Below, in pieces: positions 6,547 to 16,409 of a DNA stretch of 64,000 nt. Within the stretch, counting starts at the first letter, position 1; each line of letters begins with the position of its first letter. The stretch lies in the sequence record NC_048053.1. One strand, given 5' to 3'. Made by a program: the position numbers and the translations under genes. The notes below the pieces were generated by a model. That model saw only the letters and a program-made list of their open reading frames with translations. It did not search any database and was not told where the DNA came from.

Positions 6547-6553
6547 AAATTAG
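6547..6553 (-). promoter_or_regulatory. candidate late promoter core CTAATTT
   Basis: about 30 nt upstream of ATG 6517, just past a terminator; same heptamer at 14430, 33752 and 50395. Confidence 0.45.
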
Positions 6554-13703: not shown

Positions 13704-14113
13704 AGCGGCCTCAATGCAAATGTGACGGAATCCTTATCTTCCAGCGCAGGAACTCTCCATGCAATATAGCATTCGTAAGTTTGCTGTTCAGAGCGGAAAA
13801 CTTTCACATAAATATTTGTGATATCGTTAGTCAATCCGTTATCCGGATCTTCGAGCGCAGTTTTAATATGCGTTTGAATCCATCCGGCTGTTTCATCGTC
13901 GAACGGTTCGAATAAATCTTTATAGACAAGGGAACCAAATTTCTCCCGCCATTTACGCGAACCTTTTCGCGTACCGATAACGAATAAAACTTTTTGCGTG
14001 ATGCTGTCCATATCCTGAACTGTATCACGCAATTCCATTTTGATATCCATGTTGATATCAGAATAGATTGCTTCGTTAGCAGGAACGTTAACACGCTTTG
14101 TAATTATGCCCAT
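13700..14113 (-). CDS. baseplate wedge gp25-like protein
   Basis: YSDINMD...SITQKVLFVIGTRKGSRKWREKFGS matches the gp25/GPW motif. Confidence 0.85.
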   Translation of the reverse strand: MGIITKRVNVPANEAIYSDINMDIKMELRDTVQDMDSITQKVLFVIGTRKGSRKWREKFGSLVYKDLFEPFDDETAGWIQTHIKTALEDPDNGLTNDITNIYVKVFRSEQQTYECYIAWRVPALEDKDSVTFALRPL

Positions 14114-14403
14114 TAGCCAAACCCTACGTTACCTGAACCGTTGCTTGCCGTATCGCCGCAAGTATTTCCGTCTCCCGCACGCTGCGCAGGTTTTCCATTT
14201 ACGAAAACAGTTGCGCCGCTAGTAGCGTATCCGGTATGTGGCGGTTTCTTTGGCTTCCAGTGAGGTTGATAAGGATCGCCATTACGAACAACGCCCAAAC
14301 CATTCACAAAAACATTTCCGGAAGCACCAACAGGAACAACAGGAAAATACCCACTGTGACCAGTAGTTTGATCAGCACCCAATCGAATAACAGGTTTTCC
14401 CAT
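14113..14403 (-). CDS. PAAR-repeat spike tip protein
   Basis: PVIRLGAD..TGH...NVFVNG..VVRNGD...H...VFVNGKPAQRAGD..TCG. Confidence 0.92.
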   Translation of the reverse strand: MGKPVIRLGADQTTGHSGYFPVVPVGASGNVFVNGLGVVRNGDPYQPHWKPKKPPHTGYATSGATVFVNGKPAQRAGDGNTCGDTASNGSGNVGFG

Positions 14404-14429
14404 TAGATTTTCTCCTTTTGTTACTGGTT

Positions 14430-14436
14430 AAATTAG
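14430..14436 (-). promoter_or_regulatory. candidate late promoter core CTAATTT
   Basis: 27 nt upstream of the PAAR start, just past a terminator. Confidence 0.45.
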
Positions 14437-14440
14437 TGGC

Positions 14441-14477
14441 AGAAACAAAAACGGGCAGCACAAAGGCCACCCGTTTT
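14441..14477 (-). terminator. intrinsic terminator closing the non-coding tract
   Basis: AAAACGGGTGGC-CTTTGT-GCTGCCCGTTTT-TGTTT. Confidence 0.85.
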
Positions 14478-14927
14478 CGTATCAAATTTTTCATGCGGAT
14501 TTAAAAGTTTGACTCGCAGCCTATAGAATAACGGCGCGGCAATCGGTATATAGCTTGGGCAAATAAAAGCAGTTGTTCGCCGTGTTGCATCCGACAGAAT
14601 CGCCGCGCCATTTGGAGGCGGCACAAAACCCCACGTCTGAAATTTTGTTTGTCTGAATAAGCGGAGTTACCCGCAATTTACCGCAATCAAATTTAAATTT
14701 TTCGGCAAGTGTTGTCGCTGTCTAACACATCCCCATAATGTGCGCTTTGCCGTACACCACGGCGTAGCCAGACGCGAGACGTTTCGGTGTTCTCGCACAC
14801 ATTTCTATAATGCCTGATCTTACCCCTTGCCAAAGCAAGATCAGTAGCGACATAAGGAGGATGAGATCTTTCACTCTGAATGTTTCCTTATATCGAGTTC
14901 TTCAAATACATTTTACAGTATTAAATC
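14478..14927 (-). ncRNA. candidate structured ncRNA (about 450 nt)
   Basis: no credible ORF; stems 14531-14543/14599-14611, 14737-14803 (multibranch), 14814-14844 and 14848-14895; stem mismatches resolve as G-U pairs on the minus strand. Confidence 0.5.
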
Positions 14928-14954
14928 TTAACCACCGTAGAACCAATCATTCAT
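14928..14954 (-). CDS. possible 8-aa mini-ORF MNDWFYGG
   Basis: AGGAG RBS 8 nt upstream; ATG overlaps the preceding TGA. Confidence 0.3.
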   Translation of the reverse strand: MNDWFYGG

Positions 14955-15055
14955 TTTGCTTCTCCTGTTCCGCAATCAATTATCCACGCACGTAATTCTT
15001 CGCGAGACATTTTTGCAGGCGGTGTGAATGTTTCAGATTTAAGAGCTTTATCCAT
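14951..15055 (-). CDS. small phage protein (MDKALKSETFTPPAKMSREELRAWII...)
   Basis: 34-aa ORF below the track cutoff; resembles small phage proteins with an 'F.I.RM..AL.S......lSREE.R.fi' pattern (from memory). Confidence 0.55.
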   Translation of the reverse strand: MDKALKSETFTPPAKMSREELRAWIIDCGTGEAK

Positions 15056-15094
15056 CCGGTTAATATCAAAAATAACAACCGGATCTACAAGCGC

Positions 15095-15406
15095 TCATTT
15101 TTCAGATGCACGCATCATGCAGTCTTGCGCTTCAAGCAGTTTACGCAAACCAGCACTTTTTTCTGCGCTATCCGGAATCTCGTTATCTAGCGTTTCCGCA
15201 ATATGTCGAAAACATCCAGCAATTCCCATCTTCGTGAAATCGCCTGCGAAGCGTTCCTGATCAAAGTAGTTCATGATCGGATTAGAATATTCTTTCTTCG
15301 CGCCGCCCCAATCACCAACTTCTTTCGGGCCAGGCATTCCGGTCGGGCCAGCATTTGTTCCCGGAGAATTTTTCTTTTCGGTTATATCAATACGTCTTTC
15401 CGACAT
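15095..15406 (-). CDS. small helical-hairpin protein, possibly Acb2/Tad1-like nucleotide sponge
   Basis: GAGGA RBS; C-terminal LDNEIPDSAEKSAGLRKLLEAQDCMMRA motif of a widespread phage family. Confidence 0.6.
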   Translation of the reverse strand: MSERRIDITEKKNSPGTNAGPTGMPGPKEVGDWGGAKKEYSNPIMNYFDQERFAGDFTKMGIAGCFRHIAETLDNEIPDSAEKSAGLRKLLEAQDCMMRASEK

Positions 15407-15420
15407 TTTTTGTTCCTCTT

Positions 15421-16400
15421 AGGTAACATCCTGCATTACGCTGTTAAGGGCAACGCAATGCAAGTTGTCTTCCCAACTCTCCAGACAAAAAGATTTTCTA
15501 TTCGTTTCCCGTCTCCCCACTGAAACAGGTCTAAACGAAATCTATCTTCGAAGCCTCGCAGGAGGTCTTGCAATACGCGATGGACGGCGTAGGCAAAATA
15601 CGATCTTCGGTCTGCGGCAGTTATTTGAAATCATCGTAAGATGACAAGATAGTGTCGTAAAACCGCTACCCACACTTTAAACTTCCTGCTAAATAAGATT
15701 CGAATACGGAAGCACCGCACGGGATATTCGAAAATAAGTCCTCTTTGATTGGCAACAGCTTTTATGGTACAGCGCAATGCACACTCAAACTTCGAATGTG
15801 CATTAAGCAGTGCGAAGATTTTGTTTCCCGGTTCCCCATTGAAGCAGGTCTAAACAAAAATCTTGGTATGGCCTAGCCGGAAGCCTGAAACATCAGCAAG
15901 AATGCTCAGTAAAGAACTATCCACACCTGCGGAGGTTAAGACACTTAATCGCGAATGAAAAACTTAATGTGGAATGCTTTCGCGCACCGCTTGTCAACAA
16001 GCCACATGGATATGTCAAACGTTGCCATTACACGCTCAGACGTGTGCGAGATACCGCTCCACCGGATCTCAGTATATTCACTTTACAGTTTTAAAATAAA
16101 TATACGGAAAACGTTGGCAAAAGATTTCCCGTTTATGTCCTCGTTAGAAAACATAAACGGCATTCTTTCTTGCTGTCTGCGATAAATCGTTTTTTCTCTG
16201 TCTGGAAGAGAAAAGGCGATTTCGTTTCCCCCTGTTAGGAGCGGCTTGGTAGCCTACAAGTGAAACGGCTGCCAGTGTTATATCCCCACTTTACAGATTC
16301 GTTCTCCCGCAAAAGAACTTTTATGAATCCAACTGGCTAGGGTCTACAGACAAGGCGGGGAAAAAGTAAAACCGCCTTGCCTCAACTAATTACTATTTAC
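15421..16400 (-). ncRNA. candidate large structured ncRNA (about 950 nt)
   Basis: about 1 kb with no credible ORF in an otherwise gene-dense window; more than 12 hairpins, multibranch junctions and a duplicated 33-nt module. Confidence 0.55.
15504..15855. repeat. two 33-nt imperfect direct repeats (15504-15536 and 15823-15855)
   Basis: GTTTCCCGTCTCCCCACTGAAACAGGTCTAAAC vs GTTTCCCGGTTCCCCATTGAAGCAGGTCTAAAC, 29/33 identical. Confidence 0.9.
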
Positions 16401-16409
16401 AGATTTGCT

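Follow-up and report, generated by a model that had tools for sequence, protein, structure and literature searches.

The DNA analysed here, 64,000 nucleotides (nt) of record NC_048053.1 (hereafter the window), comes from the Dickeya phage vB_DsoM_JA29 (Salmondvirus, 253 kb); window positions are record positions minus 62000. This study concerns a non-coding tract located in an unannotated gap of this genome, between the PAAR gene and the gene of a 103-amino acid (aa) protein. Genes of the region around the tract are all on the minus strand, and on that strand the tract comprises a conserved core, a 3' domain and an intrinsic terminator (Table 1). Annotation is sparse at this place: the six records inspected in full (JA29, JA13, JA11, AD1, Y3 and SNUABM_7) have at most one annotated gene in the 1.3-2 kb around it.

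The tract is a folded non-coding RNA (ncRNA) on the minus strand of JA29. The minus strand of segment 14430-14930 folds with -161 kcal/mol (z -4.5, none of 100 shuffles being as good), versus -135.6 kcal/mol (z -1.8) for the plus strand; the z-score is -3.2 for the core alone on the minus strand, and -2.5 for the 3' part. The stems noticed in a first, sequence-only reading of this DNA were all recovered, namely a 13-bp stem, the GGCGAA hairpin within it, stems 14814-14844 and 14848-14895, and a junction at 14737-14803. The G-U pairs which that reading assigned to the minus strand are real as well (14532/14610 and 14541/14601, which read C.A or A.C on the plus strand), in line with a fold better than chance on this strand only. 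Phages JA11, JA13 and JA33 can be aligned to JA29 across the entire gap, with ~82% identity and indels that are not multiples of three, and their differences with JA29 in stems are compensatory.

Between genera, BLAST and nhmmer aligned the terminator alone, so that a structure-aware search was needed to find the family. Two phages of the IMG/VR collection, L016 and L009, were located via their PAAR protein and are intermediate relatives. A first covariance model of segment 14696-14898, R1, was made from four relatives, and gave weak matches in Erwinia phages Y3 and SNUABM_7, placed exactly between the terminator and the remainder of the gap. Rebuilt with these two sequences, the model (R2) matched at all the syntenic loci retrieved, those of AD1, Alexandra and eight additional IMG/VR genomes, and a search based on it later matched SNUABM_5, Yoloswag and the Yersinia phage fHe-Yen9-02. 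Altogether 22 phage loci were matched, with E values from 1e-7 to 1e-66, all on the gene strand upstream of PAAR. Each has one match at E < 0.01 (two sub-threshold extras, at E 0.31, appeared in the search that added SNUABM_5, Yoloswag and fHe-Yen9-02). The core is thereby present in seven genera or more (Salmondvirus, Alexandravirus, Sasquatchvirus, Snuvirus, Rivsvirus and Yoloswagvirus, plus a Yersinia jumbo phage), and its address is fixed: the terminator comes just after it, then the late-promoter motif and the PAAR-baseplate operon.

Pattern scans covering IMG/VR, and one of 185,579 species genomes, confined the core to this phage group, with one exception: a 34.7-kb contig filed in a metagenome-assembled genome of Raoultibacter sp. 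(L098:7630-7823, 67 bits), which is probably a mis-binned jumbo-phage contig. In an exact-pattern scan of metagenomes, 58 loci were collected; apart from L064, whose score is identical to that of L009 and which is probably the same phage, none matched the model at E <= 10, and they were therefore taken as chance matches. One IMG/VR match, L028, was discarded, being a high-GC sequence that reads like a coding region.

The core folds into a closed multi-helix domain, made of a hairpin P0, a closing helix P1, a long hairpin P2, a variable region P3 and a three-way junction P4. Among four distinct sequences, RNAalifold predicted 149 pairs, 21 of them with compensatory changes, concentrated in 14700-14895. 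In the alignment of 19 sequences to the model, 89% of the cells pair (74% in shuffles) and both partners are changed in 40 of the 61 pairs. The alignment has a covariation score of 0.392, compared with at most 0.103 when partners are slid by 1-3 columns, and none of 500 shuffles reaches it. Pair 9/69 of P0 is found as CG (11 sequences), UA (6) or AU (2). The 6-bp P1, already present in the minimum free energy fold of the single sequence, changes from CGC/GCG to CGU/ACG in Y3, AD1 and L020, again in a compensatory way, and all five pairs of the P4 stem have both-side changes. In Erwinia-type phages, a single long hairpin replaces P3a and P3b. Covariation in homologs, a check proposed in the sequence-only reading, strongly supports P0, P2, P3 and P4 among these relatives. 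The 13-bp GC stem shows a single G-C to G-U change.

The loop of P2 is complementary to the tail that follows P1 in all 22 sequences, under three co-varying versions: GGCAAG/CUUGCC, GCUUGG/CCAAGC and UGCUCGGC/GCCGAGCA. Watson-Crick runs are 6-8 bases long in 20 of the 22 and 5 in SNUABM_5, and in L095 the pairing is kept through one G.U. This pattern of change indicates a pseudoknot or, less likely, a contact between molecules. By comparative sequence analysis, segment 14696-14898 is a previously undescribed pseudoknotted RNA family.

Table 1. Features of the JA29 tract and of its surroundings (window positions, except for the last row)
Feature	Position	Strand	Remarks
PAAR gene	14113-14403	minus	First gene of the baseplate-tail block
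Late-promoter-like motif CTAATTT	14426..14436	minus	PAAR start codon 33 nt further on; lies outside the RNA
Intrinsic terminator	14443..14477	minus	GC-rich stem 14465-14477 with 14447-14459, then UUUUUGUUU; U tract to 14443
Lineage-specific 3' domain, ~215 nt	14480..14695	minus	Hairpins 14661-14674 and 14624-14647; GC stem around hairpin 14558-14581
13-bp GC stem	14531-14543 with 14599-14611	minus	Encloses the GGCGAA/UUUGCC hairpin 14558-14581
Conserved RNA core domain	14696..14898	minus	R1 217 bits, R2 208 bits; single copy in the JA29 genome
Pseudoknot 3' strand CUUGCC	14704..14709	minus	Pairs with P2 loop GGCAAG; tail just 3' of P1
P1 3' strand AGCGAC	14714..14719	minus
P4 three-way junction	14720..14773	minus	P4 is 14769-14773 with 14720-14724
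P4c	14726-14742	minus	5-bp stem, 7-nt loop ending GG; both-side changes in 3/7 pairs
P4a	14766-14768 with 14744-14746	minus
P4b	14749-14763	minus	Both-side changes in 5/6 pairs
P3a and P3b hairpins	14797-14813 and 14774-14796	minus	Variable region of the family; compensatory changes in both
P2 hairpin, 13 bp	14814..14844	minus	Loop UGGCAAG 14826-14832; both-side changes in 11/13 pairs
P1 5' strand GUCGCU	14846..14851	minus	Pairs with AGCGAC 14714-14719, closes the junction
P0 hairpin	14849..14894	minus	10-bp outer stem AAGGA with UCCUU, then inner 3-bp stem
50-codon ORF (open reading frame)	14722..14874	minus	GTG start, hydrophobic N-terminus; judged not protein-coding
Promoter-like motif CTGTAAAATG	14909..14918	minus	Just 5' of P0; relatives have TAATCTGTAAA[AT]AGAA; predicted start near 14900
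103-aa gene (gp106)	15095-15406	minus	Other border of the unannotated gap holding the tract
Second gap	15407-16409		Between the 103-aa gene and the 592-aa gene
Other non-coding tract, ~1 kb	15407-16402	minus	Begins with AAATCTGTAAAT directly after the 592-aa gene stop
~1.25-kb region of Erwinia-type phages	L011:2144-3460		From the 590-aa gene to PAAR; equivalents in L004, L005, L007, L012-L014, L017, L020-L022

The 3' domain behaves differently from the core. Its 13-bp GC stem is kept only in JA29, JA11/13 and L016; the 3' half is near-invariant in three sequences, diverged or unrecognisable in L009, and absent from Alexandravirus-type phages. As the stem is not recognisable in L009, its support is thermodynamic only, coming from the z-score of the 3' part. 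Yoloswag, SNUABM_5 and fHe-Yen9-02 have a different sequence of ~190-270 nt in place of the JA29 domain. Core and terminator are separated by 215 nt in JA29; in Alexandravirus-type phages, only 6-10 nt are left between the end of the pseudoknot tail and the terminator stem. The tract, read from the sequence alone as a structured one ending at its own terminator, fits an ncRNA ending in that way and is made of two parts, a widely conserved 200-nt core and a lineage-specific 3' extension. The alternative pairing of CGC noticed in the same reading, AAUGUGCG/CGCACAUU, is possible in the four Salmondvirus-like sequences; it shows no compensatory change and is impossible in the other genera.

The terminator itself, which had been placed at 14441-14477, is a genuine GC-rich hairpin followed by a U tract on the transcribed strand, its limits being 14443-14477. 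It is 84-94% identical in other genera, although the remaining gap sequence there no longer aligns, and the same type of terminator is found elsewhere in the JA29 genome. This type (GGGTGGCC...GCTGCCC followed by a T run) stands at several operon borders and is conserved across genera, for example at ~165.7 kb and ~159.8 kb of the JA29 record and at ~176.4 kb in Alexandra (L006:4001-4036). Four JA29 sites were seen, counting a related stem at 6553, and the motif CTAATTT follows within ~15-22 nt at three of them; the two together look like a reused terminator-promoter cassette. In a wastewater relative (~95% identical over the 6 kb compared, part of a 43-kb contig), 139 extra letters lie between the terminator region and PAAR; the insertion site (window 14404-14425) is where AD1, L014 and L020 have an extra small ORF of ~40 codons.

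Two short, strand-biased motifs recur at gene starts in this genome. CTAATTT occurs 16 times on the minus strand and twice on the plus strand, often just after a terminator; the start codons of tail sheath, endolysin, PAAR, gp100, gp112, gp142, gp171 and gp193 follow it at a distance of 33-44 nt. It is present between terminator and PAAR in all relatives, which suggests that the baseplate operon probably has its own late promoter. The core of the second motif, CTGTAAA[AT], is found 37-44 nt before the start codons of DNA polymerase I, the clamp loader, DNA ligase, gp189, gp201 and gp202, and also at 16393-16402, where the other non-coding tract starts, and, in 11 Erwinia-type phages, where the RNA region begins. 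The two motifs look like two classes of promoter, one for late and structural genes and one for replication genes. Since the motif preceding the RNA is of the second class, the RNA looks like a unit of its own belonging to the replication-gene class. Sites within the window are at 6553, 14436, 20689, 33758 and 50401 for CTAATTT, and at 14918, 16402, 25079 and 46691 for CTGTAAA[AT]. No description of either motif for these phages was found in the literature searched.

Direct evidence for the RNA, thin but in agreement, comes from a seed metatranscriptome, in which an 807-nt contig (depth 16) spans 14465-14967 and ends inside the terminator hairpin, at 14465, while PAAR, the baseplate genes and the 592-aa gene have zero coverage. 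Upstream of 14967, this contig continues for 316 nt into sequence unlike JA29. In the same data, a 601-nt contig (depth 44) touches 15695-15712 and 15825-15853 of the other non-coding tract, which is probably another abundant RNA. Elsewhere, 31-mers of the homologous Erwinia-type region were present in ~20 runs, most of them labelled RNA or metatranscriptomic, the kind being only guessed for several; other sequencing runs compared with the tract were DNA-like or uniformly low.

Two further reading frames lie between the tract and the 103-aa gene. On the minus strand at 14951-15097, the frame past the TGA stop of this gene (15095-15097) is open for 47 codons. It looks coding, with third-position changes between JA29 and JA13, and matches phrog_17259 (E 1.7e-6) from residue 9, upstream of its first ATG at 15055; its homologues in L016 and L009 have start codons of their own. 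Two readings are considered, an unannotated gene whose start is unusual and a stop-codon read-through of gp106. Just 5' of the promoter-like motif of the RNA, an 8-codon mini-ORF with its own AGGAG (14928-14954, minus strand) encodes MNDWFYGG. It has synonymous changes in JA13 and reads MRDWFYGG in L016 and MNDWFFDD in Yoloswag. In L009 and SNUABM_5, a longer protein ends in these residues (hydrophobic and 68 aa long in L009). The mini-ORF is either a remnant or a retained leader peptide.

Loci of the family follow two layouts. In JA29, JA11/13, L016, L009, Yoloswag, SNUABM_5 and fHe-Yen9-02, the order is a non-coding tract, small genes (families of 103 aa, 47/66 aa and 68 aa), the core, a variable 3' domain (~190-270 nt) and the terminator. 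In Alexandra, AD1, Y3, SNUABM_7 and others, a conserved non-coding region of ~1.25 kb is found, with the core last and then the terminator. Searched by tblastn, the three families of small genes gave no match in the gap of this second, Erwinia-type layout; matches were obtained in Yoloswag, SNUABM_5 and fHe-Yen9-02 and in Salmondvirus-like loci, each of the latter having two of the three families.

In Alexandravirus-, Sasquatchvirus- and Snuvirus-type phages, the ~1.25-kb region, which is unannotated in the three records inspected (AD1, Y3 and SNUABM_7), is predicted by modelling to fold as a single RNA of very large size with co-varying pairs. It has 363 predicted pairs, with 93.7% of the cells paired versus 36-43% for slid partners, and compensatory change in 142 pairs versus 34-51; a hairpin with loop GUGAUG occurs twice in it. 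Of 20 conserved blocks of the Erwinia-type region, none was present in Salmondvirus-type gaps, and homology of the other JA29 tract (15407-16402) to the Erwinia-type 5' kilobase was rejected on this ground. With no recognisable JA29 counterpart for that kilobase, the core is the only RNA element common to all.

We favour, with moderate confidence, the reading in which the tract encodes a separate, stable minus-strand ncRNA of ~455 nt that works as RNA. In JA29 it would start near 14900 from a promoter of the replication class, with some read-through from the small upstream genes, continue through the 215-nt 3' domain and end at the terminator near 14445. The compact pseudoknotted fold and the terminator hairpin would let it accumulate, and the terminator would keep this transcription out of the late structural genes. 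The core would act in trans; most likely it would serve as a platform to which a protein of the phage or of the host binds, exposing the invariant junction bases and the 7-nt P4c loop. A separate ncRNA of ~450 nt was one of the options raised from the sequence alone, and it fits the minus-strand structure, the compensatory helices, the promoter-like motif, the terminator and the RNA contig over 14465-14967.

Several points weigh against this ncRNA. As the 807-nt contig runs upstream, at least part of the RNA is joined to an upstream message, and could be its 3' untranslated region (UTR). Logan contigs are strandless, and DNA carry-over is possible in the other RNA libraries. The putative promoter is a shared motif. 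The covariation statistics come from a model-fitted alignment, so that pairing is somewhat inflated, a bias shared by the slid controls. The open ORF with a Shine-Dalgarno-like arm, present in most phages, is unexplained by a role as RNA only.

This ORF leads to the first rival explanation, in which the core would be a structured messenger RNA (mRNA) for a small hydrophobic peptide, a hok-like type I toxin or another membrane peptide, its fold shutting the ribosome-binding site until the proper moment. An ORF of 47-67 codons, hydrophobic at its N-terminus, is open at the equivalent place in 19 of the 22 phages checked (a second pass retrieved it in L014, and neither L012 nor Yoloswag yielded the frame), and in most phages its start is preceded, at 5-10 nt, by AGGAG or AAGGA paired inside P0. 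The features in common with hok/sok are a highly folded transcript of ~400 nt, an overlapping ORF of ~50 codons with a hydrophobic helix at the N-terminus, a stem that hides the ribosome-binding site, and a strong hairpin at the 3' end. Gene callers have also placed a 'hypothetical protein' over the core in Yoloswag (gp109, L102:2441-2602), SNUABM_5 (gp115, L103:2450-2644) and fHe-Yen9-02 (340c, L101:495-686). We consider these three as probable mis-annotations.

Tests for coding do not follow. Among eight gap-free relatives, the ratio of non-synonymous to synonymous rates (dN/dS) of the ORF is 0.90, codons 1-20 being mildly constrained (0.59) and codons 21-52 not (1.11), and variable columns are spread evenly over codon positions (22/20/22, no third-position bias). 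For PAAR, used as a control in the same genomes, dN/dS is 0.05 and the columns are 16/12/79. The 'synonymous' rate is 0.26 in the core and 1.15 in PAAR. A ratio close to one, flat codon positions and a low 'synonymous' rate together point to selection on nucleotides rather than on a peptide, and the protein-coding reading of the core was rejected. Moreover, stem compensation overrides the end of the ORF in L009 and L016, where compensatory changes delete its stop codon and add 8-17 codons, and L009 differs from JA29 by three separate 1-nt indels. SNUABM_7 and L014 keep the P0 hairpin, but its purine-rich, Shine-Dalgarno-like arm is replaced. As to an antisense partner of the sok type, the sole antisense promoter-like site (14712-14739, plus strand) is no better than chance and lacks its -10 element in JA13 and JA11. 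The locus also departs from hok/sok in its setting, since the phage is a lytic jumbo phage and the place a fixed border of the structural module. That a short hydrophobic peptide is translated is a minority possibility, and we regard this explanation of the core as doubtful.

A second rival holds that the core is a cis-acting leader, riboswitch-like, protein-dependent or antiterminating, that sets read-through into the PAAR-baseplate operon. The arrangement resembles that of a riboswitch or attenuator, with a conserved pseudoknotted fold, an intrinsic terminator, then a gene with a ribosome-binding site. Terminator and PAAR are the one constant neighbour of the core, the tail comes close to the terminator stem in Alexandravirus-type phages, and the same GUC bases can pair either in the base of P0 or in the outer 3 bp of an extended P1, a competition that might work as a switch. 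Against this, the conserved late-promoter motif intervenes between terminator and PAAR, so that the operon need not depend on read-through. In four lineages (JA29, Yoloswag, SNUABM_5 and fHe-Yen9-02), ~190-270 nt of unrelated sequence separate the core from the terminator. No complement to either terminator arm was seen by eye in core or tail, no systematic search having been run. The terminator type is generic in the genome, and no known aptamer or riboswitch family matches, even at E <= 10. A cis-acting leader therefore seems unlikely to us. The separation of core and terminator, the generic terminator type, the lack of a riboswitch match and the narrow conservation of the CGC alternative leave without support the switchable, ligand-sensing element envisaged in the sequence-only reading, and nothing in sequence or context points to the cyclic oligonucleotides it had suggested as ligands. 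Nor does anything mark the conserved fold out as a ligand pocket. The RNA is probably not a small-molecule switch for the PAAR operon, a ligand switch being unsupported.

We find it improbable that the tract is a protective 3' UTR, which would block 3' exonucleases on the mRNA of the small upstream genes (103-aa and 47-aa). The upstream course of the RNA contig agrees with such a role, as does the position of the JA29 tract directly downstream of these genes, with a terminator at its end. However, the core is kept in Alexandravirus-, Sasquatchvirus- and Snuvirus-type phages, whose gaps are devoid of those genes, the terminator hairpin alone would protect an mRNA, and a 200-nt junction with a co-varying pseudoknot across seven genera exceeds the needs of protection. 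That the element functions at the DNA level, be it for replication initiation, for packaging or as an array of protein-binding sites, as its place in a long non-coding gap at a module border might suggest, is highly improbable: G.U pairs and compensatory changes fit one RNA strand only, the extremes of cumulative GC skew are at 38 kb and 180 kb of the record and not at 76-78 kb, on which ground a replication origin at the tract was rejected, and no tandem array appeared in alignments or folds, though no repeat finder was run.

Going beyond the separate ncRNA that we favour, we tentatively consider a wider hypothesis, in which the core would be the signature domain of an undescribed class of jumbo-phage ncRNA. 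It would form the 3' end of a single ornate RNA of ~1.25 kb in Alexandravirus-, Sasquatchvirus- and Snuvirus-type phages, and a separate RNA of ~455 nt in Salmondvirus-type phages. Made together with the replication genes, these RNAs would build an RNA-protein or RNA-only assembly, needed by the phage either to switch to making its baseplate and tail or to carry this out, with the loop-tail pairing possibly intermolecular. Should the ~1.25-kb Erwinia-type region be one RNA, its size would exceed those of GOLLD, ROOL and OLE, large ornate RNAs of ~800, ~580 and ~610 nt, respectively.

Phage structured RNAs with a known role are very few, and for these jumbo phages, whose hosts are crop pathogens (Dickeya, Erwinia) and which serve in biocontrol, none has been described. 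With its defined 200-nt fold, co-varying pseudoknot, fixed address and tractable host (D. solani MK10), the new RNA class is directly testable. The annotation of the three deposited genomes carrying a 'hypothetical protein' over the RNA is also corrected.

How does this RNA compare with known classes? No description of an RNA at this locus was found in the literature searched. A covariance-model scan, as the sequence-only reading had recommended, shows it to be unlike any known family: the 4227 models of Rfam 15, which include riboswitches, ribozymes, GOLLD, ROOL, OLE, raiA, transfer-messenger RNA (tmRNA), RNase P and 6S, gave no hit at gathering score in the whole window. At E <= 10, segment 14300-16500 of JA29 had sub-threshold chance matches on the terminator only, and at E <= 1 the homologous Erwinia-type gap (L011) had none; ARAGORN found no transfer RNA (tRNA) or tmRNA gene in the window. 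The pRNA of phi29 is similar in being a structured phage RNA, of 120-170 nt, whose loop-loop complementarity co-varies as the sequence changes. It has no similarity of sequence or fold with the core, its pairing is intermolecular, and it is encoded at the genome end of small Bacillus podophages only.

The closest parallel is with GOLLD and ROOL, large ncRNAs that phages or prophages often carry. Like them, the RNA of the JA29 family is phage-encoded, elaborate and multi-helix, here with a co-varying pseudoknot, its role is likewise unassigned, and its core ends a structured region of ~1.25 kb in Alexandravirus-type phages. GOLLD and ROOL form published cages (PMC12286853), and the loop-tail pairing described here could in principle act between molecules too. 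In contrast to them, the present family has no Rfam match, belongs to jumbo phages of Enterobacterales hosts, and has a fixed position before the baseplate operon, instead of a place next to tRNA genes; in JA29 the RNA would measure no more than ~455 nt. What is new is the RNA family, and what has precedent, in GOLLD and ROOL, is a phage-borne structured RNA without an assigned role.

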